From Oculina patagonica (lineage: Eukaryota): a stretch of 64,000 bases of DNA. How positions within the stretch are numbered: the first letter of the stretch is position 1; the number at the start of each line of letters is the position of its first letter. A model generated the notes under the pieces. The model was not told the origin of the DNA. It searched no databases and was given only the letters and a program-made list of their open reading frames with translations. Location of the stretch: NCBI RefSeq assembly GCF_052425735.1, contig NC_135767.1:5952001-6016000 (forward strand), written 5' to 3'. Both the position numbers and the translations under genes were made by a program. This document shows positions 3,101 to 30,948 of this stretch, one piece after another.

Positions 3101-4074
3101 AAGTTAGCTACAAGTTCATCACTACAAGACATTGAATAAAACCTTAAGTGTATCGACACCAAACAGTATAACAATTTGTAGGAAGCTCTTAACTTTTACT
3201 TCAGCAAGCGAGTAAGGTCTTTTTATTATTTTACTTTTGTTCAAGTTGGCAGAGTGTACAGTTAAGTTTTTAGACTACAAGCCGTAAACCTTTGCTTGAA
3301 CAAGCGAATGCATATCATGTTACAGTTTACAACATGTATATACTGATCTCTAATCAAAAGCAGCAAGCTTTCGATTGTAAGGAAACAAACGAGTCAATTT
3401 TCTAATATTATATTTTATAGCCAGTTTGTAGATTTTCCTAGAGTAAGCGCCTTTAAACAGATTTAAAACAGACGTGTATGCACTGTGCATTCAGCTTTAT
3501 TATCTCAGAATTACTAGTTTCACGTTACCTTTACTCTCTATGGGCGGACACCTCTCTAAGACGGACAGTTGGAGCTGGACCCGCCAGTGTCCATCTTAAG
3601 GCCATGTTACACGAGGGAGGATTAAAAAACCATACCCTATCCGGCGGTACGTCCCCGTATAGGCCATATAGGGGAGTCCCCCCCGGGGCTTGTGTGCGCT
3701 TTAAAAAAAAAAAAAAAAAACCGCCAGCTACGCAGGCTACTAGAAATTATCATCCCGCGGTCGAAGGGCGCGCTCTGATTGATTCATTTTAATGAAATTG
3801 CATTGCAAGTTGCGATTGGCATGTTTCACGCAGCAACTTGTCTCGCGGCGTTGCGAAAAGTAGAGGATAGTTCTACTTTTCGTGCAACTTGCAACCCAAC
3901 ATTTTGTTCCATGCATAGCATGGGGTGTTCACACGCACAATGGAACAAATTGTATAATTGATGACTGCATACATAACGTACATACTGATTTCACGTGCTT
4001 GATTCACGCCATTTCCGATATTTTGCCATTTGCCAATCTCCTTTGTGTATTAGCTCTATTTCGTCAGCGTGACC

Positions 4075-7645: not shown

Positions 7646-8190
7646 AATGCCTTTTTAAAAAAACCCTGCATAACAGTTCTCCCTACCCTTTTGTACAATC
7701 AAACCAATGAAATCCCTACCCTTTATGTACCTACAGCCTGTAAAAAGAACCCCTTTTGGGCGGAGCATCCCTATAATTATAGTCCACTAAAGGAAGTCAA
7801 GATATTTTGTAATGCCTTTTTAAAGAAACCTGCATAACAGTTCTCCCTACCCTTTTGTATACTTCAACCAATGAAATCCCTACCCTTTTATATACCTACA
7901 GCCTGTAAAAAGAACCCCTTTTGTGCAGAGCCTCCTTATAATAATTATAGTCCACTAAAGAAAGTTGATTTTGTAATGCCTTTAAAAAACCTGTATAAAA
8001 GTTCTCCCTACCCTTTTGTACACTCCAACCCATGATATCCCAACCCTTTTATATATTTACAGCTGGAAAAAGAACCCCTTTCAGCAGAACCTCCCAATAT
8101 AGCCTACTGTAGAGGTTACCCGCCCCCCTCCCCTGGGATCATGAGTTCAAAACACCAACTGTCTGGTTGCCACATCTGGTCACATCTCCC
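7646..8190. repeat. Three tandem copies of a ~160-bp repeat; a related single copy lies at ~2845-3060
   Basis: Unit taatgcctttttaaa..cctgcataacagttctccctacccttttgtac..aaaagaaccccttt recurs at ~7646, ~7810 and ~7974. Confidence 0.8.
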
Positions 8191-8851
8191 TTAAGAAGAA
8201 AACTGAAATTATGTTCATGTTGAAAGTTTCCTACCAAGGCTCATATGTGTCATAGACCTTACTGCTCTGCAAATGCTGAAAGAATTTTTTTTTCATAAAA
8301 TAAATGTATTTTTGCCACTTTGACTTTATTAATCAAACTAAACAAAATAAACAATAGTAAGTTGGATCTAAATAGCTTTTTTATGTACAGCAGTAATGAT
8401 TACCCCAAAATTCAAGTTATGAAACACTTACATATATTCTAAGTGCACTATAAGTTCATCAATACAAGACATTTAATGAAACTTTAAAATAATCAAACTC
8501 TACAATAATTATTCATTCACAGTCTGAAAGCCAAATGTTATGGTAATCACTATGCAAGCTTCCACAATAACAAGTAACCTCTGAGATTGGCGCCACAATT
8601 ACCTGGAGATTTCCAAAAATGTATTAAAATTATTGTTATATAGCTAGAAATTTTTTCCCAACAGCACGCGCTCTTAATGGCCATTTCAAGGTTGCATGAC
8701 ATCAAACAATAAAACTGTTTTTCTGCCAAAAGTCTCTGAGTGGGAAACAATCTATGATGTCAGAGGGAAACATTGCAATGAAGTCAGCAAATGTTGACCC
8801 GACAAGCGCCATTTTTCCAAGTCTTCGACGTGCTATTTAACAAAACACTCA

Positions 8852-8945
8852 ATGACTGATCCCTTGGGAAAACAGTTAATTTTGTTTCCCTCAAAAATTG
8901 AGTTTCTCGGGAAACAAAATTAACTGTTTCCCTCGGGAACAGTCA
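8852..8945. repeat. Short palindromic (hairpin) interspersed repeat
   Basis: tgactg..gggaaaacagttaattttgtttccc pairs with gggaaacaaaattaactgtttccc..cagtca. Confidence 0.7.
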
Positions 8946-8971
8946 TCAAGTATATATTGTTTCCAAATAAC

Positions 8972-9341
8972 ATTTGAGAAGAAAATTTAGTGATAAGAAA
9001 ATGGAGCAATGTTTCGATGACTCCATGTCGTCATTATCAAGTGAAATTAGAATACAGAGTTGAAGCTTATATAGTGATCAGAGAATGGAGTGAAAATATT
9101 TAGGGTGTGATAATCTATTAGCATAGTCAATTTTTACATAATCAGTTTCATCATCATGTCTCTTCGCACCAGTAGGCGCATAAGGCCGTGCATAAACAGT
9201 TTAGCACGGACGGAATCTGATTGTGTGTTAAGTTTCGTGTTCCTGATAAAAAACTCTGTATTCTAATTTAACTTGATAATGATGACAAGGAGTCATCGAA
9301 ACATCATTCCATTTTCTTATCGCTAATTTTTCTTCCCAAAT
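8972..9341. mobile_element. MITE-like element with ~90-bp imperfect terminal inverted repeats
   Basis: 8972-9061 (..tgtttcgatgactcc..cattatcaagtgaaattagaatacagagtt) is the reverse complement of 9252-9341. Confidence 0.65.
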
Positions 9342-9626
9342 ATATTGTTTCCTGCACAATATTCACATAATCCATTACTTTGTCCTCAGGGTTTTGTATT
9401 AAACAATTATTCACCAAAGTGGAGGTGAATAGTGGTAGATATTTACCTTGCCGCGATGCGGCGAGGTAAATATCCACCACATTCACCGACACTGAGGAGA
9501 ATAATAACTGTTCACTTTATTGTTAGTATATACCGCACAAGTTTATTAACTAGCAGACCAAATAACATCACTTTTGGTAAACAAAGCGACACGCAAAGGC
9601 AGTTTGTTTGTCTTTAGCTGCTTGGA

Positions 9627-10048
9627 GGAGGGGGACACCGCAAAAATAATACTCAAACACCCCATCACCGCAAGAAAATTCGGCGAAACACCGTCACCGC
9701 AATATAATTAAGTTACTTATGAATGAAAACGGCTTGCTATTTGCAGCTAAAGCATATTAATGATCAACTAGACGATATTTCACTGTATTTTGTTACAAAT
9801 AAACATGGTATATGCCGTATATGCTAGTATTATAAAGTCAATCCAACTATAAAAAACGGATTAACGAAGATAGCAGAGCTAAAGCTAGTTCTGCACGTGT
9901 CAGACAAGAAACTGTAACACCGCCAATAATTTCGTTTCACCGAACACCGTAGGTTTAAAAACACAAACATCGCACACCGCAGGGTTTGAGATCACCGCAA
10001 CACGGGATTTTATTCACCGCAACACCGCAAACACCCATGTCCCCCTCC
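9627..10048. mobile_element. MITE with perfect 11-bp TIR GGAGGGGGACA and 4-bp TSD TGGA, nested in another palindromic repeat
   Basis: tgga|GGAGGGGGACA...TGTCCCCCTCC|tgga; many subterminal CACCGCA motifs. Confidence 0.75.
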
Positions 10049-10242
10049 TGGAGGCAAATAGTACTTTGCTAATCACCTCCGAGTAAACCAATCAGCACAT
10101 GCGAAAAGCACTATTCAGTTGTGTGGTATATACTAATAAAATATAATATTTTGAGGTCAAACAATAATCTCATCAATTCACAGCTCTACTTTTTTTTGTA
10201 ATTCATGGTCTCCCAGGAGGACTGAGTATATATATACAGTGA

Positions 10243-12005
10243 TCATGGCGTCGCTCTTAAAACGACTTCCTTGCACTTACATGTAGCTAAAACATCTCTT
10301 GATATCCGTAAAGTAGAAATGTGGTAAAATTCCCCTTCATGCACATTATGAAGATTAAAATGTGTACAGTAATGCAATTCATGTTCATCAATGTCATACA
10401 CCTGCAGTGCCAAATTCTGTCCCCTTGGTTCATTTTGGAAAGCGCCAAAAACATATATTTTCCCTTGAAAACTAACTGCACTTGCACAGTTTCTTGGTGC
10501 AACAACACTTGGAATGCTACTCCACATGTTGGTGTCTGGATCATACATTTCACAGGGATCCCCAGCTGTTGAAGCCACAGGAAGGCCTCCAAACACAAAC
10601 ACTTTTTGTTTAATGGCTGCACCACCAGCAGATGCTCTCTTTGCAAGAGTCGAAGGAAGTTTCTCCCAAGTATTTTTTCTTGGATCAAATCTTTCAACAA
10701 TGTCCATAAATTCATCAGTTCCACCGAGACCTCCAACAGCATACAAACAGCTTCCAGTAGCTACTGCACACACATTTGATCTGGGACTACTAAGTGGAGA
10801 GACTTCCGCCACTGATTTGTATCGGGATTGTATTTCTGTACTGTGCTAATCTGGTTATATTTGTCCTTTCCACCAATAACATATAAGAAACCTTGCAGAG
10901 TGACAGCAGCTGTAAAGTACTTCACAACTTCAGGAGGCTTAGTGTAAGTCCACTGGTTATGTGATGGATCGTAGCACTCTGCGACCCTACCATTTGAATC
11001 CATACTTTGTCCAAAAAGGAACAATTTATTGTGAAAAGAACTCATGGTACATACAAGCGGACAATATGTGGATGGCATTCTAGCCAGAAAATACCACTTG
11101 TTTTCAGAAGGAAGATAGCACAATGTTTTCTTTCTTCCACAAGCAACTATAGCATTCTCATGGGTCTTCAGACAATCTCTTGGAGGCTGAGAAAAAAAGC
11201 ACTCGTCTGTACCATTAGATATGGCACTCATGGCATCTAATATTAACTTTGTACATGCTGCACTGGTATTGACCAGCGGATGCTGCAACATGACATTGAA
11301 CACATAGTTGCGTGACACATAAATACAACGAACATGACGTAACAACTGCAACAAATTAAGGTCTTTCCTATTCCTATCCATCCACTTTACAATCACTTGG
11401 AAAACTTCTTCTTCCTCTTCCACAATGATTTCATCACTTGAAATCCATTCCTCGATTTCTTTGCTGCTCAGATTCAGAAAGTCCTCAGTTCCAGACACAG
11501 CAACAAAGTTGGCAAAAATCACATCGCACGCTGCGTTCCACAGATCTTCACACCGATATTTAAGGGCAAAATAAGCAGCCATTATACAGTTGGAAACGTC
11601 CAGCGTTAGTGAAAGGAATTTGCTCGACAAAGCTTTTAAACTTGGAATCAGCAAAAAATCTGCTTGTACAAACAACTCGTATGCATTCTCTTTAGTAATC
11701 TCAACATGTCCTGTGTACAGATAATCCAAGACTTGTTCTATTACAGTTTTGCTCGACTCTTCCAATTGGATCACTCCTTCTTTCTTCTCTTTCATGTCAC
11801 TGTTAAAAGCCCTGTAAAAAAATGGACTCGCTGCACATAACACAATTCTGTGAGCTTTTAAACGAGCTTGATCGTCACCAGAGCCAACTTCTAGAATTGC
11901 ATCACAGAAATGTTCGTTCCTTCGCTGAATATCGAGGCGTTTCATCATTTCAGTACAAAATAAAAGTCCCTCACTGTTTGCGATTGGTTCAAGAAGAGAC
12001 TCCAT
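10243..12005 (-). pseudogene. BTB-BACK-Kelch paralog with a 1-bp deletion frameshift at ~10807
   Basis: ORFs 10761-12005 and 10243-10812 join into one KLHL protein. Paralogs read CAG TGG CAG GAA GTC TCT; here CAG TGG CG GAA GTC TCT. Confidence 0.85.
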
Positions 12006-12231
12006 CGACAGGCTGGCAAAAGCTAATACACAAGGGATAAAATTTGAAGTGAATCAAGCCCGCGAAATCAGTAGGTACGCTATGTATGGGATCACTAAGT
12101 ATATACATTGTTTAATTCTAGGTCAACGTTCATGAGAGATACATGAAGTAGCTACTGTGCCTCGTGGCGTCCTTTGCTTTGCGTCTTTGTCTTCTTTGTG
12201 AAAGGAACAGCTTTATTTCATCAAACTTACC

Positions 12232-14035
12232 ATGGATTCTCTACTCCAACCAATATTAGACACTGAAGAACATCCATTTTGTGCTGAAATGATGAAACGC
12301 CTCGATATTCAGCGAAAGAACGAACATTTCTGTGATGTAATTCTAGAGGTTGGTTCTGGTGACGATCAAGCTCGTCTAAAAGCTCACAGAAATGTGTTAT
12401 GTGCAGCAGGACCGTTCTTTTTCAACGCTCTGAACAGTGACATGAAAGAGAAGGAAGAAGGTGTAATCCGATTAAAAGAAACGAGCAAAGATGTAATGGA
12501 GAAAGTCTTGGATTATCTGTACACAGGACATGTTGAGATTACTGAAGAGATTGCATATGAGTTGTTTACACAAGCAGACTTCTTTCTGATGCCGAACCTG
12601 AAAGCTTTGACAAGTAAATTCATTGTGAAAACGCTAGATATTTCCAACTGTATCATGGCTTATCATTTTGCTGGCAAGTACCAGGCAGAAGAACTGCTGA
12701 AAGGAGCGAGGGAATTCATTCTTGCCAACTTTGTTGCTGTGGCTGGAACTGAAGACTTCCTGAATCTGAGTGCTGAAGAAATCGAGGAATTCATTTCAAG
12801 TGATAAAATAATTGTGAAAGCGGAGGAAGATGTTTTCCAAGTGATCGTAAAGTGGATGAAAAACAATAGCGGAGATCAAGACTTCTTGGGGTTGTTGCAT
12901 CATGTTCGCTGTAACTACCTGTCACCCAGCTATGTGTCTGATATCATCTTGCAGCATCCATTGGTGAAAGCCAGTACAGCATGTGAAAAGTTTATATTAG
13001 ATGCCATGAAAGAGCCATCTGAGGGTACAGGCGATTGCTGTTCTCCTGCCAATAAGAGATTGTCTGAAAACCCATGATGTTGTAGTTGCTTGTGGAGAAA
13101 AGGAAACATTGTGTTATCTTCCTTCTGAAGGCAAGTGGTACAAGCTGGCTGACAAGCTATCTACTCATCACTCTTATTATTATGGGTTAAGCCCTTTCAA
13201 CAGTAAGTTGTTCATCATTGGAGCATGCAAAGAGCGAGATGGTCACATCGCAGAGTGCTATGACCCTTCACAAAACCAGTGGAATCCCATAAGTGCTCCA
13301 GAAATCATGGACCGTCGTACAGCTGCAGTGGCACTCCAAGGTTTTCTGTACGTTGTTGGAGGGAGAGACAGGCATGAAAATGTCCTTAACACTGTGCAGA
13401 AATATAATCCTGATACAGGTCGTTGGCAAGAGGTGTCTCCCCTGAGTAGTCCCAGGTCAAATGTGTGTGCCGTGACCGATGGAGGCTATTTGTATGCTAT
13501 TGGGGGCATGAGTGCAGATTATCAATATCTGGACATTGTTGAAAGGTTTGATCCTGGGAACAATACTTGGAGTGAACTTCCTTCAATGATAACAAAGAGA
13601 GCATTTGCTAGTGGTACAACCATCAGAGGAAAAGTTTTTGTGATTGGAGGCCTTCAAATAGCTTCATTAACTGGGGATGCTTGTGAAATGTATGATCCAG
13701 ACACCAACATGTGGAGTAGCATTCCAAGTGCTGTTGCACCAAGAACCTATGCAAGTTCAGTGAGCTTTAAAGGACAAATATATGTGAATGGTGTTGTCCA
13801 AAATGAGCAAGGAAGGGAAGTAATGTCACTGCAGGTGTTTGACGTTGAGAAAAATGAATGGAAAAGCTGTCCAGAAAATGTACTTCTTTATGGCTGGCAT
13901 GAAGTTACTACTCTAACAATACCAAACAATATCTTGGTTAAATGCAGGGAAATTTCAGAAGAGGAGATCCAGTGGCGAGAGGTCTCCAGAAGGCTAGCAG
14001 GGGGTGGTCCCCTTTTACGGTCTTTGAGACTTTAA
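12232..14035 (+). pseudogene. BTB-BACK-Kelch paralog with a frameshift at ~13035-13055
   Basis: ORF 12232-13077 (BTB-BACK) and 13109-14035 (Kelch) are in different frames. The conserved RDCLKTHD..VACG motif is in the downstream frame from ~13056. Confidence 0.85.
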
Positions 14036-14872: not shown

Positions 14873-15950
14873 AAAAAGAACATCTTTTCTAACATCGGGT
14901 ATGAAAACTTTTAAACATATTTTTGCCTGTAGTAACACCTCTGTTGTGAGTGATTTTTGACAATTAAAAAACCTCAAGCATGTAATACAAGAAAAACTGA
15001 AAAACTAACACCTAGATGTTGGCAGAAGGTTGTCATTAATGGTTATTTTCCTACACTATTTCTGTCCTCACATGACAGTTTATCAAGCATTAACTTTGTT
15101 TGTTGCATAATTTAATATAAACCATTTTAAGCCTCTTTAGACCTTATGTATGGTATTGTTCAAAATATTCTCACCGTATTGAAAGCCATTTAATTAATTG
15201 CTGTAAAATAGATAGAGTGCTTCGAATTTCCAGAAAATTTTATAATGTGAATTTGCTCATTTTTATCTTTTTAATTTATTACAAGAGTGATGTTTTAGAC
15301 TTAACTTGTTTTATAGGTACCGGTTCATGTACTACCACATTATCTTCAGTCATTATAATAATAATTTTTTTTATTGTTCTGAGGGTCCACAATAGGGTTT
15401 CCAGATCCCGCCATCCTGGCTAAAATTTTCCCTCAATCCTGTAATCCCAAAGGCTTTTATTGGCTTATCCGTATCCCGACCATTTAATCCCTTGCCTCAA
15501 TGATAACAGGCCTTTCAGTGAGTGTATATTCCCTTCTAGCACTGGTCTTGAAGCCTTTAGTCACCGCCAATAGGCTGTAAGCTAATTTCTTTCTTTCCGT
15601 GTAAATGAATGTTATAGAATGTAATTTTAGAATGATAGATAGTAGATGTGGGTGCACTCAGTGTTATGACCATTGCAAAGCAGCTAAACTTTGTCAAAGA
15701 CAACAGCATGTCATGCGATTGTTTCGCACCACGGGTTAGGGTACTACTTGAGTTGAAGATTCACAAGGAAAATAAGGTCCACGGGATCTACCGGTTGTTT
15801 TGAACTAGTTTATTGGTACAAATTCCAACTTGCACATGCTAGCTAGTTAACTGAAAGTAAAGGTATACATGTGGGTCGACTATAACATCTTTAAAATCAG
15901 ATAAAATACAAATTGAATCGACAAAAAAAGCTGTCTCTAACATATGGTCG

Positions 15951-16360
15951 ACACACATGTACAATAGGAGTTATGGCGCAAACCGTGACAACTCGCTCGG
16001 CTCGCCCAGGCTCGCCTCGCTCCTTGTCACAATTTGCGTCCATAACTCCTATTGTACATGTGTGTGCGGATCGCAAGCCGCTTTTTTATCCCTCTTGCGC
16101 CACAAGTAACAAAAAAAAGGCCTTTGACTGCTTTAACTTCCCGAAGCAGTTTCACTTGACCCCACTGTGTACCAGTCGTTGTTTGGTTGCATTATTACCT
16201 TATAAATACAAACTTTTAATTGACAAAAAGACTTGAGTGCGGATCGCAAGCCGCTTTTTTATCCCTCTTGCGCCACGAGTTACAAAAAAGGCTTTCGGCG
16301 GCACCTCTAACGGCCCGCAGCAACATAGTGCGCTAGATTTATTTTCCAATTGAACAAATA
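15951..16360 (+). repeat. Left terminal inverted repeat: terminal hairpin 15951-16065 plus an internal direct duplication (~16064-16125 and ~16238-16295)
   Basis: Imperfect reverse complement of 31856-32192; gtgcggatcgcaagccgcttttttatccctcttgcgccac occurs twice. Confidence 0.9.
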
Positions 16361-16383
16361 TTTTTCTTTGGCATATACAACAG

Positions 16384-19300
16384 ATGGCTGCCGCAAGATA
16401 TTCGTCAGAAGTTTTGCAAGCTATGATGGAGGAAAACATCCGTGAATTTCAAAGAAACCCCCAAAGAAATTTAACTTTTTTACTGGCCCAAACAGATTTC
16501 AACGAATGGCTCCGTGTATGGAAAATGTCAATTCCCGAAAATGACCAAAACAACAAAGATCTGTACAAATTTGCAAGAAAAAACAAAAAAAAGTTTTCCG
16601 ATTTGTTAGAAAGCGAAATTGAAGACTTAAAAAGCATAAAAGCCAGCTTTGGGCTTGAAGTAAAGTTTTCAAAAGAAACAAACGGTGTTACTCAGCACAT
16701 GAGCCACTATTTCAGAGAAAGAGAACCCCACGTTTTCACAGAATACAAAAAAGATGAAATAAAACCAAATTTTGACAATTTTATTGAAAAAGCAAAGGGA
16801 GAAATCGAGGCTTGGTCGGAAAGAGGCTCAGGCTGGGTTATTGAAAGAATAACTGAGGCGTACATCAACGTTGCGCGTTATCAGCCATTGCGAGGTGGAA
16901 CTTACTTGCCATTGCCCCCAAAATTGGCAAAAAAGAAAGCCATTATAAACGTCCGAAACAAGGACAACCAGTGTCTAAAATGGGCACTAAGGGCGGCGCT
17001 ATTTCCTCCCAAAGATGGGAAAGACGCCCAAAGGCCAAGCAAGTACCCAGCCGATGACGGGATAGACTACAGCGGAATCGATTTTCCAACACCCCTAAAA
17101 CAGCTTGACAGGCTTGAGGCGAAAAACCCAAAACTCGCAATGAACGTCTTTGGATGGGTGGATGGCCGTGTGATTCCACTCAGAATTAGCGAAAAAGAAA
17201 AAAGCATTTCCCGTATTTGTCTTATGTTAATTGAGTCGGGCGAAACCCAGCACTACTGTTTTGTAAAAAGAGTAAGCGCACTGCTTTACGATCAGAGCAA
17301 ATCACACAACAAAAAACACTTTTGCATGTTGTGCTTGACCGGTTTTTCAAGAGCAGATTTGCTCGAGAACCACGAAAAATATTGCAATGGAGTTAATGGC
17401 AGGCCGACAAGGATCGAGATGCCGGAAGAGGGGAACAACACCCTTTATTTTAAAAACTACCACAAGCAAATGAAAGTGCCTTTTGTGATTTACGCAGACT
17501 GTGAGGCATTGTTAAGAAAGATGCAAGGATGTAAACGCGAAACGTCAGAAGACCGCCAGAAGATAAAAGATAAAGGAGAAGAACTGGAAGACTTGAAGCA
17601 AAAAAGCCACACGGAAAAGACAGAACAGCACGAGGCGTGTAGTTTTTCTTATACTGTTGTGAGGAGTGACGGAAAAATAAAAAAGCCCTTTGTTTACAGA
17701 GGAGAAAAACCCATGGAAGTGTTTTTGAACTGCCTTTTAAGCGAAGAGCGACAAATAAGGCATGAATTGTCAAATCAAAGCCCAATTGTTATGACTTGGA
17801 AAGACTGGGAAAAATTCAAAAAAGCAACCGTTTGCCACATTTGCGAAGACCCGTTGATGAAACAAAACTTTTTAGACTCGTTGCCGGTTTGGATTGGGAA
17901 TGAAAAGAAAAAAACTCTTGATTACTTTGGGCAGATGCACAAAAAATGTTATTACAAAAAGGAAAAAGAGGCGAGAAACCTTAAGGAGGACCATAGCTGT
18001 GAGCTGAAAAAGTTGACAAAAAAAGAACAAAAAGAGGCCGCAAAAAACCAAGAAAATTGCCTGGCTTGCAGGGTGGCCCATCACTATGAGCTGAAAAAGT
18101 TGACAAAAAAAGAACACAAAGAGGCCGCAAAAAACCAAGAAAATTGCCTGGCTTGCCGCAAGCCGCTTATCCAGCCAAGCTACAAAGATGTGGTAAAGGA
18201 CCATTGCCACATAACAGGGAAGTACCGAGGAGCAGCGCACAACTTGTGCAATCTGTTGATGCGAATAAACCCAAAGACGATCCAAATACCAGTTGTATTT
18301 CACAACCTGAGGGGCTATGACGCGCACCATTTAATGCAGGCGATGTCAAAGATTTCAAAAGAGGCCCAGAAAGAGGTAAAATGTGTTGCAAACAACATGG
18401 AAAAATACATCACATTTTCACTGGGCGGCTTAAGGTTTATTGACAGCTTAAACTTTCTACAAGGAAGCCTTGATTCACTTGTAAAAGGCATGCCAAAAGA
18501 GGCATTAGAAATAACAAAATCTATTTCTAAAGAAAATTACAAACTTCTTTTCAAAAAGGGAATCTACCCTTACGAGTACATAGACTCTTGGGAAAGATTT
18601 AGAGAAACAAGTTTGCCAGAAAAAGAGAAGTTTTACAGCAAGCTGAACGACGAGCACATAACAGACGAAGAGTATGCACACGCTCAAAAAGTGTGGAAAA
18701 CCTTTGGTTGCCGAAATCTTGGAGACTACCACGATTTGTATGTTAAAACAGACGTAACTCTGTTAGCTGACGTTTTTGAGAGCTTTCGAAAATTATGTCT
18801 TGAGAAGTATGGCCTCGACCCAGCCCACTATTACACGTCGCCAGGCCTTTCTTGGGACGCGCTCTTGAAAAAGACACGCGTGGAGCTTGAGCTACTCACG
18901 GACTATGAAATGCATAGCTTTGTGGAAAGGGGAATAAGAGGCGGAATTTCAATGGTCAGCAAGAGATACGCAAAGGCGAACAATCCATATGTCGAGGGCT
19001 TTGACCCGAGCCAGCCCAAAAAATACATAACGTACCTTGATGCGAATAACCTTTACGGCTGGGCAATGAGCAAACCACTGCCGAAAAGCGGTTTTAGATG
19101 GAAAAAGGTAATGCCAACAGAAAAAGAAATAATGACAAAAAAGGAGCAAGCAAAAGCTGGATGGATTTTGGAGGTAGACCTTGAATACCCCGCCAAACTG
19201 CACAGAGCCCACAACAGCTATCCATTAGCACCAGAGAAAAAGAAAATAAACGAAGAAAAGTTTTCACCTTACCAGAAAAAAATAATAAAAGATCTTGATT

Positions 19301-20376
19301 TGAAACTGCCAGACAGCAAAAAGCTCGTATTGACTCTCGAAAACAAAACCAATTACGTTGTGCATTACAGAAACCTGCAGTTTTATCTGAAACAAGGAAT
19401 GAAGCTCAAAAAGGTGCACAGGGTTTTGGAGTTTGAACAAGAGGCGTGGATGGAGCCGTATATCCGAATGAACACAGAATTCAGGAAAAAAGCAAAAAGT
19501 GTCTTTGAAAAGAACTTTTACAAGCTCATGAATAACTCTGTTTTCGGGAAAACAATGGAAAACTTGAGAAACCGAGTAGACATAAAAATAGTTCGGAGCG
19601 ACGAAAAATACAAAATAAGAAAACTGGTTGCCAGCCCATTGTATTCAAGGCATGTAATGTTTTCAAACGATTTGGTTGGAATAGACATGCACAAAAGCAG
19701 GCTTTTTCTCAACAAGCCGGTCTACACAGGAATGACTATCCTCGATGTAAGTAAGATATGCATGTATGACTTTTATTACAACCACCTGAAAAAGGAGTAT
19801 GGGTCGAAATGCGAGTTGCTTTACACGGACACCGACAGTCTTTTGCTTGAGATAGAAACAGAAGACTTTTACGCGGACATGGCAAAAAACATTGACGAGT
19901 ATGACACAAGCGGATATCCGAAAAAAAATCCACTTTTTTCATCTAAAAACAAGAAAGTTTTAGGCAAAATGAAAGACGAGTGCGCGATAGAAGAAGAGTG
20001 CAAGATTACAAAAGAACTTTTTCCAGTGCTTCACACTATTTCAGAATGTGTATGTTTGAGGCCGAAAATGTACTCAATAATGACAGAAAAAGTGCAGAGT
20101 GACCGTGAAACGGTGCCTGTGAAACCCGAAAAAAATATCAAAAAAGCGAAGGGTGTGAAAAAATGTGTGATAAAAAATAAGATAAATCACAAAAACTTCA
20201 AAGATACACTTTTTCAAAACAAAGAGAGCTTTCACGAAATGCACATGCTAAGAAGCGAGGGCCACGAGATGTATTCTATAGTGGTCAACAAAAAATCGCT
20301 GTCGCCATTTGACTCAAAGCGATGGATAGCGGATGATGGGATACATACAAATGCTTACGGATATAAGCCGACATAA
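16384..20376 (+). CDS. polB: Protein-primed family B DNA polymerase (pPolB), 1330 aa, with N-terminal TP/vOTU-like region, zinc fingers and an EndoVII-like motif
   Basis: Exonuclease motifs YADCE, FHNLRGYD, YVKTDV; polymerase motifs YLDANNLYGWAM, KLMNNSVFGK, YTDTDS; Polinton-type GSGW..YQPLRGG, NKDNQCLKW, HYCFV, CMLC..H..YC, DHCHITGKYRGAAH..CN. Confidence 0.97.
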   Translation: MAAARYSSEVLQAMMEENIREFQRNPQRNLTFLLAQTDFNEWLRVWKMSIPENDQNNKDLYKFARKNKKKFSDLLESEIEDLKSIKASFGLEVKFSKETNGVTQHMSHYFREREPHVFTEYKKDEIKPNFDNFIEKAKGEIEAWSERGSGWVIERITEAYINVARYQPLRGGTYLPLPPKLAKKKAIINVRNKDNQCLKWALRAALFPPKDGKDAQRPSKYPADDGIDYSGIDFPTPLKQLDRLEAKNPKLAMNVFGWVDGRVIPLRISEKEKSISRICLMLIESGETQHYCFVKRVSALLYDQSKSHNKKHFCMLCLTGFSRADLLENHEKYCNGVNGRPTRIEMPEEGNNTLYFKNYHKQMKVPFVIYADCEALLRKMQGCKRETSEDRQKIKDKGEELEDLKQKSHTEKTEQHEACSFSYTVVRSDGKIKKPFVYRGEKPMEVFLNCLLSEERQIRHELSNQSPIVMTWKDWEKFKKATVCHICEDPLMKQNFLDSLPVWIGNEKKKTLDYFGQMHKKCYYKKEKEARNLKEDHSCELKKLTKKEQKEAAKNQENCLACRVAHHYELKKLTKKEHKEAAKNQENCLACRKPLIQPSYKDVVKDHCHITGKYRGAAHNLCNLLMRINPKTIQIPVVFHNLRGYDAHHLMQAMSKISKEAQKEVKCVANNMEKYITFSLGGLRFIDSLNFLQGSLDSLVKGMPKEALEITKSISKENYKLLFKKGIYPYEYIDSWERFRETSLPEKEKFYSKLNDEHITDEEYAHAQKVWKTFGCRNLGDYHDLYVKTDVTLLADVFESFRKLCLEKYGLDPAHYYTSPGLSWDALLKKTRVELELLTDYEMHSFVERGIRGGISMVSKRYAKANNPYVEGFDPSQPKKYITYLDANNLYGWAMSKPLPKSGFRWKKVMPTEKEIMTKKEQAKAGWILEVDLEYPAKLHRAHNSYPLAPEKKKINEEKFSPYQKKIIKDLDLKLPDSKKLVLTLENKTNYVVHYRNLQFYLKQGMKLKKVHRVLEFEQEAWMEPYIRMNTEFRKKAKSVFEKNFYKLMNNSVFGKTMENLRNRVDIKIVRSDEKYKIRKLVASPLYSRHVMFSNDLVGIDMHKSRLFLNKPVYTGMTILDVSKICMYDFYYNHLKKEYGSKCELLYTDTDSLLLEIETEDFYADMAKNIDEYDTSGYPKKNPLFSSKNKKVLGKMKDECAIEEECKITKELFPVLHTISECVCLRPKMYSIMTEKVQSDRETVPVKPEKNIKKAKGVKKCVIKNKINHKNFKDTLFQNKESFHEMHMLRSEGHEMYSIVVNKKSLSPFDSKRWIADDGIHTNAYGYKPT

Positions 20377-20418
20377 ACAGAACGTTTAGAGCTTTTCTGA
20401 GCCCAAGGGGCTCAAGCA

Positions 20419-21409
20419 CTAAGTGCTTGGTGGTAACTGTGTATTTGGAGGAATAATAAGCAATTCTTCACGCACAAAGCCGCGCTTGGGGCCATCGTGC
20501 AAGTAATAAAGCACTGGCTGATCAGGTTTAGTAACAGACCTTTCGATGCTGTAGACTTTTAATGACCAAATCGGATCTGTTGCCCTTTTTACGCCGCCTT
20601 CTAGCTCGCCAGGTTGGAAGAGATAGCGCACATTAACGAGAGAGGGGAGTTTTTTTTCTTTCAAGCCAACAGGTCTTGTATATTTTGAGGACGGCTTGGA
20701 CGAAACAGCCTTTTCTTTGATTGCAGCAGCAGGTTTCTTGCCAGTAAGACTGGTTACTTCGTTGTTCAGAGCGGTAACAACTTCGGGAAGCCTTTTTTAC
20801 CCACGCTGTCGACCGCTGGCCAGATGGCAGGTTCATCTCGACACCGTACTGATAACCAAACAGGCGCCCTGCCAGTGTTTGATTAAAACGTTCAACAATA
20901 GCTTGATCTCTGTGGATATTAACACGCCCGCGTCTAATATAGGTTTTGTGATTTTCCATTTCTTTAGTAACAGCTCCCATGAATTCGCGACCAGGGTCAA
21001 CTTGAAGCATCTGTGGCCATTTTAGTGCACTTCGCCTGTAAATTGTCTGAAAACCTTTTGCAACCTCAGTTGAATCTTTGGAGGTCAAAGGCTCGGCCTC
21101 TTTGTAACGGCTGGCAACGTCAACAACAGTCAGCGCGTATTTGTAAACTTTTCGCCCTCGCGGCAGTTTGTCGTGTGGCAGAAAAAGAAGGTCCGCCTGG
21201 TGGACCGCGTTAGGAGAAGAAACATCGAATTTTGGGCGAGGAACGTATCGTGGTGCCGGAAGGTAGATCTGCCAAAGGGCCTGCTTAACGAGCCACTTTT
21301 TAGCAGCATCTTCGGAAACCTTGGCCGCCTCGGCTAATTTTTTTATCGCTGCAATTCCCTTCCAGTAGCCCTGGGGGCTATAGTAGACTTTCGAGATCTT
21401 TGCATCCAT
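20419..21409 (-). CDS. Retroviral-like (rve, DDE) integrase, ~329 aa if repaired; interrupted by one extra base in a 6-nt homopolymer at 20793-20798
   Basis: HQADLL, YALTVVDVASRY, QVDPGREF, IVERFNQTL. Removing one A gives WVKRLPEVVTALNN... which runs into ORF 20419-20664. Confidence 0.9.
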
Positions 21410-21468
21410 GCGAGCACTTCGTGCGTGTGTCACAACGTGACTGTGTATACAAGAAAAAAAAGAAACGT

Positions 21469-21894
21469 TTAAAGAAACCGAAAGGCAGCGTACCCAAGTG
21501 CAAGCGCGCCAGCGCCAACGAACATAAGTTCACCTTGTTTCTGCTGCTCACTTGGCTGATAGAAATCAGAGAACTTGGGTTCTTTCGGAGGAATCATTTG
21601 TTTGTCAGGATGTGCCTGGTTGTAGAGTTTGAAAGCGTAGTCAGTGTTAGTGAAGTTCTGTTTTGCCTGCTCTTTTATTTCCGCGTTGGTTTGTATCCAG
21701 TCGAGGAGCTTGGTGCGGTCGCGAGAGTATTTCGCGTAAGCTGCCTGGTAAGCCTCGAGAGCTTTGTCGTGTCTTTCTTTTTCTTTCAAAGCGGCGTCAT
21801 CTCCACCACCCAAAGCACGAGCAAGGTAGTTGCCGCCAATGAAAGCAGCAGCGTTTAAGATAGCGCCGCCAGCCATAATAGCGATGCTTGCCAT
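21469..21894 (-). CDS. Viral hypothetical protein, 141 aa, hydrophobic N- and C-terminal helices
   Basis: N-terminal MASIAIMAGGAILNAAAFIGG, helical charged core, C-terminal LMFVGAGALALGYAAFRFL; tightly packed in the viral gene run. Confidence 0.75.
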   Translation of the reverse strand: MASIAIMAGGAILNAAAFIGGNYLARALGGGDDAALKEKERHDKALEAYQAAYAKYSRDRTKLLDWIQTNAEIKEQAKQNFTNTDYAFKLYNQAHPDKQMIPPKEPKFSDFYQPSEQQKQGELMFVGAGALALGYAAFRFL

Positions 21895-21927
21895 TTTTGA
21901 ACTTTGTTAATATATTATTAACATTTT

Positions 21928-22146
21928 TTAATTGGTGGGTAGAATTTTCTGGTCCTCGAGATACTGTTTAAGTGCAACGCTGCCAGCCATGACGGCTGTG
22001 AACTTTACATAGTTCATAAAACTGCTGCTTGGGTCGGATGTGAAGTTTTCTTTTACAACTTTTTTGGCAGCCCAGCCGATTCCGGCGGCAAGGCCAGTGA
22101 GAGTCGCGGCATCCATGAGTGTTTTTACGAGTTTGTTGTCAGACAT
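21928..22146 (-). CDS. Small viral membrane/amphipathic protein, 72 aa
   Basis: ATG at 22146 (MSDNKL...); two hydrophobic segments AATLTGLAAGIGWAAKK and FTAVMAGSVAL; preceded by the shared upstream motif. Confidence 0.7.
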   Translation of the reverse strand: MSDNKLVKTLMDAATLTGLAAGIGWAAKKVVKENFTSDPSSSFMNYVKFTAVMAGSVALKQYLEDQKILPTN

Positions 22147-22270
22147 GGTGTTTGTTATAAAATAAAAATAAATATTTAAATTGAAAAATAATTTTATGAA
22201 TTCTTTTAATCTCATCAAAGAGTTCTAATAAAAAAAAGTTAATTGCTGAAGTCAGAAAGTAAAACAGAAA

Positions 22271-22663
22271 TCACTTTCTTAAAAACTTTAGTTGGACAAA
22301 CACATCATGCCACATGGAATTAAAGATTTTTTCCATTTCAGCACACATCAAACTTTTTGCTTCTTCAATCTTCTCTTTTCTTTTTTCTTCATTTTCTATT
22401 TTTTCATACTCTTTTTCAAGTTTTATTAAATCCTCATACTGCCTGTTTAAACTTTCCACAGTTTTTTCATCAATAGCAATAAAATTTTTTAATTCTTCTG
22501 GTTTCAGCTGGTTAAAAAAGGCTTTTGTCCCTTCCAAAGCAGCTGTTGCTCGTGCCTCATCTTCTTCGAAGAATTTCCCAAAGAACTCGGCACAGAGACC
22601 CAACAAAACAAAGCTTCCAAAATCCATTGGGTCAGGCATAGTGTATGTCTTCGTGTCGGTCAT
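22271..22663 (-). CDS. Viral hypothetical protein, 130 aa, E/K-rich helical
   Basis: ATG-initiated ORF in the co-oriented gene run, preceded by the shared upstream motif. Confidence 0.6.
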   Translation of the reverse strand: MTDTKTYTMPDPMDFGSFVLLGLCAEFFGKFFEEDEARATAALEGTKAFFNQLKPEELKNFIAIDEKTVESLNRQYEDLIKLEKEYEKIENEEKRKEKIEEAKSLMCAEMEKIFNSMWHDVFVQLKFLRK

Positions 22664-22720
22664 CGTGTTTTGTATACTTTAAAAATCAAATGTTTAAATG
22701 AAAATTATTTAATAATTTTT

Positions 22721-23293
22721 TTAATCCATCGGACGGATTCCTCTTTTTGAGCCATTTTGTTTTGTTGGTTGCGGAATTCTAGAGCCCGTTTGGCGCGTGT
22801 CTGAAGAACGCGTTGCAACCCTTCCAATACTTTCTGCTGTAACTGGTGTGTCATCAGTTATAAGAGTTGGCGGAGATTTAAATGTTGGACTTCTTTTTTC
22901 GTTTATAAAGGCTTTTATGTCTTCGCGTTTCACATAAGTTGTAACGATTGCAACGCCGATACCAAGCAAAGATATCCATTGATTTGTGGTGAGACCGCTT
23001 GATTGCGGCTGAGCCTCGGGCGGAGCTGGTTCCGTTACGGCCGGTGGTGTTACATTTCGCTTTGCAGATGCAGATTTCTTTTCCTTTTCTTTTGCAATTA
23101 TTGCAGCAGCCTCGATAGAAGCTTTTTTCTGTGCTTCACGAGCCTGTTTTGTTTTTTCAGCTGCAAGCTTGCCAGCAGCCACTCGCTTTGGATTTTTGGC
23201 AGGTTTTGTTGCAGGAGTTGTTGAAGTGACTTGTGGAACGTTTTCTTGAACAACTGCAGGTTCGCTCGGTATTTGTGTTTCAGGGTCCGCCAT
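22721..23293 (-). CDS. Viral hypothetical protein, 190 aa, single predicted TM helix, P/A/K-rich
   Basis: KNPKRVAAGK basic motif; TM-like WISLLGIGVAIVTTYV. Confidence 0.7.
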   Translation of the reverse strand: MADPETQIPSEPAVVQENVPQVTSTTPATKPAKNPKRVAAGKLAAEKTKQAREAQKKASIEAAAIIAKEKEKKSASAKRNVTPPAVTEPAPPEAQPQSSGLTTNQWISLLGIGVAIVTTYVKREDIKAFINEKRSPTFKSPPTLITDDTPVTAESIGRVATRSSDTRQTGSRIPQPTKQNGSKRGIRPMD

Positions 23294-23408
23294 TTATTAG
23301 AAAAAATAATAATATTTAAATGAAAAATGCTTAGCAAACTTTTTTGGTCAGCATTTAATGAGCATTGTTCAGTAATTACTTAGCATTTTCTTAGCATTGC
23401 TTAGTAAT

Positions 23409-23969
23409 TTACTCAGGAAGATCTTTATGCTCGCTTTCTAGAGTCGCTTGTGGTGCTGTGCTGTAATCAATGTGCTTTGCCGTTATCAAAGCAACAGAAG
23501 CTGGAGCAAGAAACTTGCCGTATTTGAAAGACAAACCGCCGACAAGATTGGAAAGCTCGTTGTTGATGATGTAGTCATTTTTAAGCTCTTTTTGCAAAGC
23601 TTCAATATTTTTTAAGGGCACGAACAGACTTGCGGCTTTCGTAAAAAGAGTGAGCGCGCTGTCGATAAGATTTTCTGTGGTCTTGGCCCCAACATACGCT
23701 TCGTACCTCTTGAAGTACTTTTCGACGTCTTTGTCGGTCAAGCGCTTTACCTGATCGTGAGTTAGCTGCACACCGATTGCTTCTTTAGACTTGCCTGTTG
23801 AAACAAGTCTTGCAAGCTGTTCACGTAAAGCTGGAATGTCAGGTCCCGCTGCTTGCATCTCTGACGGCATACTGCCTGGTTCAGGTTCTAGCATTTCCAT
23901 TACGGACGTTTCCAACATAATTCGTTCACTTGCAGTGATATCAGTGGAAGTTGCGAACGGGTCAGCCAT
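23409..23969 (-). CDS. Viral hypothetical protein, 186 aa
   Basis: Intact ORF between the ATPase and the 190-aa gene; hydrophobic segment FLAPASVALITA near the C-terminus. Confidence 0.7.
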   Translation of the reverse strand: MADPFATSTDITASERIMLETSVMEMLEPEPGSMPSEMQAAGPDIPALREQLARLVSTGKSKEAIGVQLTHDQVKRLTDKDVEKYFKRYEAYVGAKTTENLIDSALTLFTKAASLFVPLKNIEALQKELKNDYIINNELSNLVGGLSFKYGKFLAPASVALITAKHIDYSTAPQATLESEHKDLPE

Positions 23970-23990
23970 TTATTACTCTAAAAAATATGT

Positions 23991-24590
23991 TCAATAAAAA
24001 AATTCTGTGCCGTAAGGGTGGCGATGAGAAATAACAAGATGCGAAAACTTATTTTTTTTCAGCTTTGAAATGACTTCTTTGTAATCTTCATGGGAAAGTT
24101 CGCCAGCGTAATCCTCAAAGATTGCCTTCGTGGTCTTGGCAGAGGGGGTGTAAAAGAAAACAATTGACGCAACATTTTCGCGGAATGAGGCTGTTATGCT
24201 TGTCAATTTTTGAGTTAACACCCATACGCTCAAACCTGCGTGGCGAGCAGAGAAAGCAAGATTCACCAATTCACCTGTTCTTCCTTTTACATCTTTCGAT
24301 GCAGCACAGTCGTCGAGGATGATAAGCGTGTTCGCACCCTCAAAAAGAAATCTTGAAAACCTTAACCAAGATTCAACCTCGTGCTGCTCGCAAATGAAAA
24401 CAAAAAATCGAAGATCTTCCTCAGCAAAGCGATAATAAGTCTTGTTGTGCGCAAAAGTCGGGCAGATGAGCACGATGTAGTCAAACTTGCCTCGGAAAGG
24501 GCCACAAAGCTGATTGACTACGTACCTTGTTTTTCCTGAGTTCGTTGGTCCCACAATGAGAGCGTTGAAGGGTATGTTGGAAGGATCCAT
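23991..24590 (-). CDS. A32/FtsK-HerA family genome-packaging ATPase
   Basis: Walker A GPTNSGKT, Walker B LIILDD, arginine-finger motif SARH, and hhTQ motif (VWVLTQ). Confidence 0.93.
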   Translation of the reverse strand: MDPSNIPFNALIVGPTNSGKTRYVVNQLCGPFRGKFDYIVLICPTFAHNKTYYRFAEEDLRFFVFICEQHEVESWLRFSRFLFEGANTLIILDDCAASKDVKGRTGELVNLAFSARHAGLSVWVLTQKLTSITASFRENVASIVFFYTPSAKTTKAIFEDYAGELSHEDYKEVISKLKKNKFSHLVISHRHPYGTEFFY

Positions 24591-24603
24591 CTTCGTTCGT
24601 ATA

Positions 24604-25857
24604 TTAATAAAGCACAGATTCTAACTGCCTGCCAATTATATTCATTTGGGCGTCGCTGATTACGTAAATGTGGCAGTTCAAATTACCTGAGCCGCTTGCT
24701 TTCCTCTCTAGCTCAAGCTGGACACCGTCCTTTGTGTTCACAAGGCGCTTGCCGCTTCCGTGCATCGAGTGGTCAGCCATGGAACGCAGATCAATCAGAA
24801 GGCCGAACTTGTCTTCTGTGTAAAACTTTTGCAGGGTCATGTGCTGCGTTTTATTTTTTTCTTTCATGTAGAATCTTTTAACTTCTTCCCATATGTCCAT
24901 TCCTTCGATGCCGTTGTTGTACAGCATGTTTGGCGAGCCGTTGACAGTGACGCTTACTTTTGTAAGGTCTGGGTTAATGTACTTTTCCGAGATCCTTGCA
25001 CCTTTGGCATATTGCTCTATAAAAAGTAGCAAGATACCTTTTAGGGACCTCCTCTGAGGGTTGACCTTAAGATTCAGACGTGTGTCGGATCCTTTTGCAA
25101 AAGTAACAACTTCGGCACGCTGGATGTGGTCGTAAGCGAACTCTTTGCCGCCCGAGTAAGCGCTGAACGCCTCATCTGCAATTTCCTTGCTTCTTATCAT
25201 TTCGTACTCTAGCTGTATGTTTGTCAGCTTGTATTTCAGTTTTGTTGCATCTGAGCCTCTTACAACATGTTCGGCTGCCGCGAGCTTCAGTTCGAACAGA
25301 AGATCGTTGTATAGTGCCTGTGGATAAAATGCTCCGTGGTCAGTTAAAATCTGGTGATCCAGACGGATGCGGTATTTATTACCATATAGCTCATTCAGCT
25401 TTTTTTCTGCGTCGACTCCTGAAGTTTTCTTATCGCCAGCATTTGAGCGAATTTTGTTGAGGTCCTCGCTCTGAATGCCCTCTGGCACCCTGTCGTCGCG
25501 CTCCTCCTGCGAAAGGAAAAAATCCTCAAATATTTTGTAGATGTCATAGCCAACCGTGTCCTGCACGACGGTGCCTTCGTACTTTACAACAAACTTGTCG
25601 ACCAGAGCTCGGCTGACGTTGTCAACCAGAAAGTTGTTGGCATGGCCTCCGCTCAAGTCGATGTTGAAGCGCAGCGCCAGCGAGCCAGGCACAATGACCT
25701 CGTTTTCGTTCAGCTTTGGCACTGAAACATACAACGTTTCCTCTGGATTGGCTTCAGTGCGGTCAAAAGTGATTCGTTTTACAGCTCGCTCGGCTTTCAG
25801 TGCGCCGAGGGTTTTCTCTACGCGTCCCGGTCGAAGGTTTTCTTGAACAGCAGCCAT
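24604..25857 (-). CDS. Probable double jelly-roll major capsid protein, 417 aa
   Basis: Size, beta-strand-like alternating pattern, position next to the packaging ATPase, and N-terminal (VIVPGSLALRFNI) and C-terminal (HIYVISDAQMNI) patterns resembling PLV MCPs. Fold not computed. Confidence 0.75.
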   Translation of the reverse strand: MAAVQENLRPGRVEKTLGALKAERAVKRITFDRTEANPEETLYVSVPKLNENEVIVPGSLALRFNIDLSGGHANNFLVDNVSRALVDKFVVKYEGTVVQDTVGYDIYKIFEDFFLSQEERDDRVPEGIQSEDLNKIRSNAGDKKTSGVDAEKKLNELYGNKYRIRLDHQILTDHGAFYPQALYNDLLFELKLAAAEHVVRGSDATKLKYKLTNIQLEYEMIRSKEIADEAFSAYSGGKEFAYDHIQRAEVVTFAKGSDTRLNLKVNPQRRSLKGILLLFIEQYAKGARISEKYINPDLTKVSVTVNGSPNMLYNNGIEGMDIWEEVKRFYMKEKNKTQHMTLQKFYTEDKFGLLIDLRSMADHSMHGSGKRLVNTKDGVQLELERKASGSGNLNCHIYVISDAQMNIIGRQLESVLY

Positions 25858-25919
25858 CTCTCGATTGGTTTTATTGTTAAATTGAAAAGTTTAATTTGAA
25901 AATATATATAAATTACGTG

Positions 25920-29062: not shown

Positions 29063-29102
29063 TTTATATTAAAGATTTATTTTTCAAAAGATAATTATAA
29101 AG

Positions 29103-29768: not shown

Positions 29769-29792
29769 TATTTTTTTATTGTATACGAGACC

Positions 29793-30479: not shown

Positions 30480-30521
30480 ACACTGGATTTAATCTTAGTG
30501 TTCAGAAAAATAAAATTAACG

Positions 30522-30607
30522 CATGACACAAATCGTGACATTGTGTTACACACAGCGTGACATTGTGTGACACAGAGCGTGACAGTCACGCGTGACGTTG
30601 CGTGACA
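30522..30607. repeat. Cluster of (C/T)GTGACA motifs inside the virus
   Basis: cgtgaca/tgtgaca/cgtgacg repeated about 7 times; the same core occurs in the terminal hairpins and upstream of the integrase (21427-21442). Confidence 0.7.
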
Positions 30608-30623
30608 GGTCAAACGAAAGGGC

Positions 30624-30925: not shown

Positions 30926-30948
30926 CAAAAAGTTACGGCCGCGTTAAC

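Follow-up and report, generated by a model that had tools for sequence, protein, structure and literature searches.

Each end of a Polinton/Maverick element in the coral Oculina patagonica is a long terminal palindrome, and this hairpin end is probably a working part of DNA-end copying or maintenance in the Polinton lineage concerned. The element occupies positions 15951-32192 of a 64,000-nucleotide stretch of the genome (NCBI RefSeq assembly GCF_052425735.1, contig NC_135767.1, positions 5,952,001 to 6,016,000 of the forward strand), which was analysed as a whole and is called the window here; coordinates without another label refer to it. This single element measures 16,242 bp and is flanked by GGTCG as a direct repeat (15946-15950 and 32193-32197); it ends in (AC)3A//T(GT)3 and has terminal inverted repeats (TIRs) of about 400 bp that are 88-95% alike between left and right. 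An open reading frame (ORF) for a protein-primed family-B DNA polymerase (pPolB), an rve integrase, an A32-like ATPase and the ~400-bp TIRs together class it, by its sequence, as a Polinton/Maverick.

The terminal palindrome lies at the integration boundary, is conserved among related elements, covaries between its two arms, keeps a fixed orientation, pairs best toward the terminus and co-occurs with one polymerase lineage. Our proposal, to which we give roughly even credence, is that one coral Polinton lineage has conserved it as the outermost module of its inverted terminal repeats (ITRs), and that it serves as a fold-back origin or telomere module.

Terminal palindromes of the window element

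The left, pPolB-proximal palindrome (type 1; 15951-16065, plus strand, 115 nt) consists of an outer arm beginning with (AC)3A (15951-15991), a C/T-rich asymmetric loop (15992-16023) and an inner arm (16024-16065). Its outermost segment, 15951-15976, pairs perfectly with 16040-16065 over 26 bp, and the stem is extended by CGCAAA/TTTGCG and GTGACAA/TTGTCAC. The right, far palindrome (type 2; 32058-32192, minus strand, 135 nt) is built likewise, with an inner arm (32058-32110), a loop (32111-32142) and an outer arm that terminates in T(GT)3 (32143-32192). Folded as DNA, the left end reaches -43.3 kcal/mol against -12.3 ± 2.4 for shuffled sequences (z = -13.1; none of 200 shuffles as good), and the right end reaches -55.3 kcal/mol (z = -14.0). 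An earlier, sequence-only reading of this DNA had proposed a self-contained hairpin at each terminus, and these values bear it out. Both strands of the palindromes fold equally well, and Rfam holds no match to the terminal hairpin.

The palindromes directly abut the target duplication and are the true termini of the element. A nested insertion of a miniature inverted-repeat transposable element was considered as the source of the hairpin and ruled out, since the hairpin sits at the exact terminus, at both ends and in many independent insertions. The arm motif occurs five times, with zero occurrences expected. The right end also has a third arm (31987-32057, plus strand), an extra direct copy of the inner arm and of part of the loop that is arranged in tandem with 32058-32128; a second Oculina copy, L012, has this arm at both of its ends. 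Elsewhere in the window, local palindrome regions of comparable size are confined to 8867-9341 and 53934-54159. The former holds two palindromes unrelated to the Polinton, one with 24-nt arms (8867-8932) and one with 90-nt arms (8972-9341).

When the four arms are aligned, arm positions 13-14 read AA in both left arms and GT in both right arms, and a 9-nt tandem copy of CGCAAA(A)CC is present in both right arms and in neither left arm. Other differences are one-sided: each inner arm carries an extra base ~26 nt from the end, the right end has an A.A mismatch at arm position 11, and the left end has CC/TT. The claim of the sequence-only reading that end-specific changes occur in both arms and preserve pairing holds for the AA/GT substitution and the 9-nt copy, but not for these one-sided differences. 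The 32-nt loop is asymmetric, being C/T-rich on the strand whose 5′ end is that terminus. It faces inward alike at both ends of the window element, and the two versions are 95% identical over 55 nt.

A shared terminal module in related elements

Relatives were found by protein search and retrieval of the encoding contigs, which yielded 12 related elements, denoted here by locus numbers. L012, L013 and L014 are from O. patagonica, and L003, L007, L009, L010 and L011 are from the ENA assemblies ERZ25067556 and ERZ25067872. DNA-level routes to the window's own family failed: a scan of viral contigs with the arm motif gave no matches, and by exact look-up the window ATPase is not on record. The same motif scan of JGI metagenomes returned three matches, all of them chance occurrences in bacterial coding sequence, and no ATPase relatives were confirmed among viral contigs.

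A common terminal module is present at 17 ends from four assemblies. It is carried by the window element, L003, L007 (three element ends and one solo copy) and L009 through L014. Read from the outside in, it begins with the (AC)3A terminus next to a 5-bp target duplication. After a perfect stem of ~25 bp, the inner arm, but not the outer, has one or two bases in excess; a second stem follows, and it leads to a loop that is conserved and asymmetric and contains two direct CTCG-rich half-sites. Palindrome length ranges from 115 to 170 nt across the lineage. Apart from a few invariant positions the arms are unlike between lineages, yet they are complementary inside each hairpin. Because the same architecture recurs with its own target duplications in independent assemblies, the palindromes are not assembly artefacts.

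Several relatives lack the module or cannot be read to their ends. L002 has complete TIRs with different, G-rich ends and no long palindrome, and it serves as the negative example. No TIR was found in L008, which has just a partial palindrome remnant. The contig of L001, whose ATPase is closest to that of the window (93%), is cut within ~59-bp tandem repeats, so that its terminus is not readable; its positions 1-190 hold three or more such units in direct orientation, which slightly resemble the window arm. The palindrome is not at the contig start of L015 (JBAJNK010000102.1), which belongs to a more distant lineage and is probably cut. This 9.5-kb contig encodes a Polinton-type polymerase 45% identical to the N-terminal part of the window polymerase and was deposited in a Flavobacteriales metagenome-assembled genome from an Oculina metagenome, probably through a binning error.

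L007 also contains a free-standing palindrome (654-823 of that locus). About 200 bp away is the terminal palindrome (1013-1194) that belongs to a second Polinton copy, and relative to this neighbour the free-standing one has its loop, together with 13 bp of flank, in the opposite orientation. CAGCA stands on either side of it, though inside a CAG run. Either a solo mini-element or a junction duplicated in inverted orientation could account for it. A profile search found no other free-standing palindromes in the window or in the remaining loci.

Arms covary within each hairpin

Covariation was computed on 12 hairpins. Pairing in the terminal 26-pair helix is 98.4%, and 12 of its 26 pairs are changed on both sides while none is changed on one side only. 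None of 500 shuffles reached the observed pairing and covariation, and slid registers pair at 34-55%. Pairing declines with distance from the terminus: successive 10-nt bins contain 2, 6, 18 and 21 mismatch or indel columns, each out of 170. Only one cell among 466 is a G-T pair. This near absence of wobble pairs, together with the strand symmetry, indicates a DNA palindrome and not an RNA structure. Judging from these comparisons, the arms are kept complementary both across lineages and inside the window's own family.

Relative to type 1, type 2 hairpins differ in both arms by the 9-nt duplication, by an extra A and by GT instead of AA. The identical 9-nt duplication and extra A in the two arms are the strongest single sign of templated copying from arm to arm.

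One orientation at all ends examined

The homologous loop reads identically inward at both ends of the window element, of L012, of L014 and of L010, at three ends of L007, and at one end each of L013 and L011. The extra base is on the inner arm at every end examined. Ends of L012, L013 and L014, which lie outside the set used to build the profile, also score best in the inward direction. If each end were an independent coin flip, one orientation at ~13 ends of 8 elements would have a probability of ~2^-12. Flip/flop inversion of the hairpin was not seen at any end examined.

Hairpin transfer inverts asymmetries in each round, so a single orientation speaks against transfer of the parvovirus or poxvirus kind. 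In addition, no HUH/Rep domain was found among the 16 window ORFs scanned against Pfam. The fixed orientation, the encoded pPolB, the terminal short repeat and the lack of a Rep-like domain in these scans argue for end-to-end protein-primed copying over parvovirus-like hairpin transfer. The label 'parvovirus-like', which the sequence-only reading had applied to this end architecture, is not supported for such ends.

Palindromes accompany one polymerase lineage

The window pPolB is 56-78% identical to the pPolB of the palindrome bearers L007, L009, L010 and L011, all of which have an Endonuclease VII-like insert in the polymerase. The polymerase of L008, which retains a palindrome remnant, matches that of the window over the C-terminal third only. 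Identity to the L001 and L002 polymerases is ~25% and confined to the polymerase domain. Among the elements examined, the palindrome was found only with the window-type pPolB lineage bearing the Endonuclease VII-like insert and is not tied to the capsid module. Ends that track the polymerase and not the capsid genes are expected if the palindrome is the polymerase's cis-acting site, although the sample is small.

Other genes of the element have a different affinity. The L001 ATPase is 93% identical to that of the window, and the N-terminal 206 aa of the L001 integrase are 99% identical, while the C-terminal part of the window integrase is 78% identical to that of L001 and 84% to that of L007. 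A module junction appears to lie inside the integrase gene, which also bears that gene's single frameshift. By these comparisons the element is a mosaic in which recombination is evident.

Exchange within and between ends

L012 is an O. patagonica copy 95-97% identical to the window element. Both of its ends are of the window's right-hand type: the palindrome is 135 nt long, includes the 9-nt duplication, the extra base and the mismatch at position 11, and is accompanied by the third arm. Over the outer ~250 bp the two ends do not differ from one another. The window's right hairpin is the same in alignment as both L012 hairpins and has an equal profile score. Left-right differences in the inner TIR are common to the window element and L012, for example an 11-nt segment present at the far ends only, indicating that the inner part is not homogenised between ends. 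In L013 and L014 the capsid module is 96% identical to that of the window and the polymerase gene is 76-81% identical at the nucleotide level. Their hairpins are 115 nt long and have the architecture of the window's left end, with no duplication and the same loop variants. An end-specific substitution of L014's own is present in both of its arms, and the left-right differences of L007, L009 and L010 are one-sided only.

The pattern in which ends differ and arms covary thus holds for the window copy and, weakly, for L014. The sequence-only reading had supposed that each end is homogenised against itself, and this is not general: the two ends of L012 are identical, the differences in L007, L009 and L010 are one-sided, and asymmetries between the arms are conserved. 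As far as these copies reveal, concerted change from arm to arm is real but occasional, and left-right copying also occurs.

The simplest history is that type 1 is older and that type 2 arose at one end, with its changes reaching both arms. The window element would then have retained type 1 at its left end and type 2 at its right end, and the L012 lineage would have copied the outer ~250 bp from end to end. Treating the window's left end as the derived type was dropped in view of the L013 and L014 hairpins. The left-right difference of the window copy has a second possible reading, in which a type 1 and a type 2 allele of the hairpin were brought together in a mosaic element. Because the element is a mosaic elsewhere, swapping of ends between variants is a possible route for this copy.

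A fold-back model and its alternatives

Under the fold-back proposal, a single-stranded end, whether a strand displaced in protein-primed replication or a resected end, would snap back on itself. The folded 3′-terminal ~25 nt would then lie in a duplex identical to the one that a double-stranded end presents to the polymerase/terminal-protein complex, and synthesis of the complementary strand could start at this folded end with no need for a panhandle between distant ends. A damaged or mismatched 3′ end might be trimmed and then refilled from the inner arm through the fold-back, which would explain both the concerted changes of the arms and the best pairing at the terminus. Copying would otherwise run from end to end, so that loop and extra base stay in one orientation, with occasional left-right copying of the outer ~250 bp as in L012. 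The idea that a fold-back regenerates a duplex origin locally was already part of the sequence-only reading. It is physically plausible and fits the perfect terminal ~25-bp stem of most relatives.

Several points weigh against this proposal. The evidence throughout comes from integrated copies, and a free linear form, a single-stranded intermediate and a terminal protein have not been observed. Selection for pairing, acting without templated correction, would also yield single-base covariation. The A.A mismatch at arm position 11 is conserved in three type 2 ends and the extra base ~26 nt in is retained, and such conserved imperfections between outer and inner arm imply that the arms correct one another infrequently and incompletely. 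Past the retained extra base lies the 9-nt duplication shared by both arms; simple refilling of a 3′ end explains neither this duplication nor the retained extra base and mismatch. One end-specific substitution in the window could instead be two CpG decays at symmetric sites, starting from the state of the third arm. Finally, L002 is the only palindrome-less relative with both ends visible, and the link to the polymerase rests on few cases.

Paired protein-binding sites are an alternative that we regard as possible but unlikely. The arms would be inverted sites on duplex DNA for the integrase or for the polymerase/terminal-protein complex; folding would not be needed, and the same protein would keep the two arms alike. 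Invariant stem positions amid covarying ones (1-8, A11, T15, T21, T22, T24 and G25) do suggest sequence-specific recognition. The direct third arm at the right end and in L012, together with the three or more direct ~59-bp units in L001, also favours such sites, as multi-site transposon ends resemble such repeated arms, and the possible solo palindrome in L007 would fit a unit with two usable termini. However, at positions that differ freely from lineage to lineage the two arms still match in 98.4% of cells, and the terminal helix has no one-sided change. Independent drift of two sites at uncontacted positions would not produce this, and a 9-nt duplication present in identical form in the two arms requires copying rather than selection. 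Binding sites are also compatible with the fold-back proposal, since a folded stem shows the same duplex site.

It is improbable that the palindromes are a functionless by-product, produced when a strand accidentally folded back or the template was switched in the course of replication or host repair and tolerated thereafter, with the left-right difference reflecting recombination of variants. The terminal region is indeed prone to duplication, as seen in the third arm, the 173-bp-spaced duplication at the left end and the tandem units of L001; the element is a mosaic; and a preprint on palindrome-ended elements of a protist names accidental annealing as an alternative (bioRxiv 10.64898/2026.07.28.741278). 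Yet a detailed plan persists over polymerases diverged to ~56% identity and over four assemblies, and random fold-backs would not preserve an asymmetric loop or a terminal motif.

We consider hairpin-primed replication of the parvovirus or poxvirus kind very unlikely, despite a stable hairpin at each terminus and a nuclease-family (Endonuclease VII-like) domain fused to the polymerase. In such replication the folded 3′ end primes synthesis, and nicking and hairpin transfer follow. The Endonuclease VII family, we presume, includes junction-resolving nucleases. This model has a precedent in the same preprint, where it is proposed for palindrome-ended virophages and Polinton-like viruses of protists (bioRxiv 10.64898/2026.07.28.741278), but the palindromes described there go preferentially with replicases other than pPolB. 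The coral elements encode pPolB and end in a short repeat of the kind typical of protein-primed replication, the scanned ORFs yielded no Rep/HUH domain, and the single orientation of loop and extra base at ~13 ends (~2^-12) is not what hairpin transfer would leave. An RNA-level hairpin, such as a small-RNA precursor or a structure of TIR transcripts, can be set aside almost entirely, for although a strong hairpin would form in RNA too if transcribed, there is one G-U cell in 466, no one-sided change in the terminal helix, equal folding of both strands, an exact integration boundary and no Rfam match.

The fold-back proposal has a more specific extension, which we advance tentatively and think rather doubtful. 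The polymerase-fused Endonuclease VII-like domain and the palindrome may form one replication module, in which the fold-back end would be a self-contained origin. The nuclease domain would recognise the branched or mismatched fold-back, including loop-outs and mismatches of the stem and perhaps extruded cruciforms, and would start its correction or processing. If true, this module would also explain identical indels in both arms.

Relation to known systems

A published account of vertebrate Mavericks (PMC8097293) describes elements much like the coral one: they measure ~16 kb, encode pPolB, an rve integrase and an A32-like ATPase, and have a short repeat at the very end, a short duplication of the target and TIRs that span a few hundred bp. 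The (AC)3A//T(GT)3 motif itself is described there for Mavericks of the swamp eel Monopterus albus, with a presumed role in jumping back. A terminal palindrome is not mentioned in that report's text on TIRs, termini and end motifs, whereas the first 115-170 nt of the coral elements are self-complementary. By comparison with the vertebrate elements, the coral lineage also has a 5-bp instead of a 6-bp duplication and an Endonuclease VII-like insert in the polymerase.

A July 2026 preprint on endogenous virophages and Polinton-like viruses of Halocafeteria seosinensis that carry rve integrases reports palindromes inside the TIRs, adjoining the target duplication, and proposes that they act as hairpins in replication (bioRxiv 10.64898/2026.07.28.741278). 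Those palindromes are ~52 nt long, belong to a protist, occur mostly with non-pPolB replicases and are interpreted through hairpin priming. The coral palindromes, in contrast, measure 115-170 nt, occur with pPolB, and show covariation and a fixed orientation that argue against hairpin priming.

Among protein-primed genomes, adenovirus, PRD1 and phi29 share with the coral elements a terminal repeat for slide-back or jump-back, ITRs and the problem of copying a displaced strand, as set out in two accounts (PMC11886824; PMC8097293). According to the displaced-strand panhandle model (PMC11886824), the duplex origin in these systems is thought to be restored by pairing of distant ends, while each coral end could do so alone. 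Moreover, the inner TIR of the window's family keeps left-right differences that are stable between copies.

Among known systems, the telomeres of Streptomyces come closest to combining protein priming with ends that fold back. Their 5′ ends are capped by terminal protein, and the 3′ single strand bears fold-back palindromes that have been likened to the parvovirus 3′ end (PMC4513846). They differ in having an internal replication start, end patching by Tap and Tpg, several small palindromes with G:A-closed loops, unrelated proteins and a bacterial replicon, whereas the coral Polinton has a pPolB replicase and one long palindrome per end. General Pfam scans of the window ORFs turned up no Tap or Tpg, and no search was targeted at them.

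Parvovirus and adeno-associated virus (AAV) ITRs and poxvirus telomeres are likewise terminal palindromes with conserved mismatches or extrahelical bases. These viral ends need a nicking or resolving enzyme such as Rep and undergo flip/flop inversion, unlike the coral ends, which have one orientation, the hallmarks of protein priming and no Rep seen. Hairpin derivatives of the linear killer plasmids of yeast were described in the 1980s. Bidnaviridae combine a Polinton-derived pPolB and TIRs with parvovirus-derived genes, but their terminal repeats are stated not to form hairpins of the parvovirus type (PMC4061559).

The suggestion of the sequence-only reading that such ends had not been described can no longer stand in that form, given the similar terminal palindromes reported in 2026 (bioRxiv 10.64898/2026.07.28.741278) and the classic capped fold-back ends of Streptomyces (PMC4513846). 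We found no description of a conserved, covarying terminal palindrome of fixed orientation in pPolB-encoding animal Polintons; the literature covered did not include the founding Polinton paper.

Gene content and boundaries of the element

The unstranded target duplication GGTCG (5 bp) is identical in its left (15946-15950) and right (32193-32197) copies. With element ends placed at ACACACA...TGTGTGT, the duplication is 5 bp wherever readable, namely GGTCG in the window, CGTTG in L012, ATAGA in L014 and AAACG in L007, and L009 has 5 bp with one mismatch, TA[T/C]GT. The Polinton/Maverick target duplication is usually quoted as 6 bp. The short duplication made by the rve integrase is present, and just its length (5 versus 6 bp) deviates.

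The inner part of the left TIR spans 16066-16360 on the plus strand, and its segment 16234-16359 has a homologue in the inner right TIR (31855-31986, minus strand). A direct duplication confined to the left TIR (16061-16116/16234-16289, spacing 173 bp) copies the initial ~56 nt of the inner TIR; neither the right end nor L012 has it. In L009, the TIR (351 bp, 98.6%) reaches into the first ~30 polymerase codons (at 2490-2583 and 17148-17240), and the far end of that element consequently carries a copy of the polymerase start.

The 1330-aa uninterrupted ORF at 16384-20376 (plus strand) is identified as pPolB through Pfam matches of its relatives only: PF02945 is its sole Pfam match (24.1 bits against a cut-off of 23.6; the Endonuclease VII-like insert at aa 564-625), and relatives 51-60% identical to it carry both PF03175 (DNA_pol_B_2) and PF02945. 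Within this ORF, an in-frame 87-nt tandem duplication (17985-18156) with copies 93% alike lies just upstream of the PF02945 insert and covers a lysine/glutamate-rich stretch that ends in Cys-x-x-Cys. An rve-type integrase follows at 20428-21409 (minus strand). Its match to PF00665 (E = 7e-7, 29.9 bits) is below the cut-off of 32.6, and it aligns over its full length with the 330-aa integrases of relatives, split over two frames, which indicates one frameshift.

The A32-like DNA-packaging ATPase is encoded at 23991-24590 (minus strand; PF04665, E = 1.8e-10) and has 1798 relatives with E <= 1e-20. A conserved 417-aa Polinton protein to which no function is assigned is encoded at 24604-25857 (minus strand), and its protein cluster comprises 27 members. 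The closest proteins to the polymerase and to this 417-aa protein are from O. patagonica, at 85% and 99% identity, respectively, in keeping with the cnidarian host assumed in the sequence-only reading. Candidate ORFs for an adenain-like protease and for the major and minor jelly-roll capsid proteins agree with relatives in gene order and size and have no Pfam or PDB sequence match; PDB sequence searches with the polymerase and three further ORFs gave nothing useful. Outside the Polinton, many inverted segments of ~1-1.6 kb with 77-86% mutual identity (4039-13859, 34661-36234 and 40059-62510) presumably belong to other repeat families.

Implications for Polinton replication

So far, replication of Polintons/Mavericks has been understood only through a model borrowed from adenovirus, in which protein priming is combined with a left-right panhandle. 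The conserved, covarying module described here is sequence-level evidence that each end can act alone in this lineage. In the elements compared, a replication module made of polymerase and ends is seen to move independently of the capsid module, and the lineage lends itself to studying the extent to which polymerases and end sequences evolve together. The combination of (AC)3A, a ~25-bp stem, an extra base and an oriented loop is also a marker for complete elements in cnidarian genomes. If the Endonuclease VII-like domain and the palindrome do form one module, it would give linear DNA elements of eukaryotes another means of copying and maintaining their ends, the third after the panhandle and the rolling hairpin.

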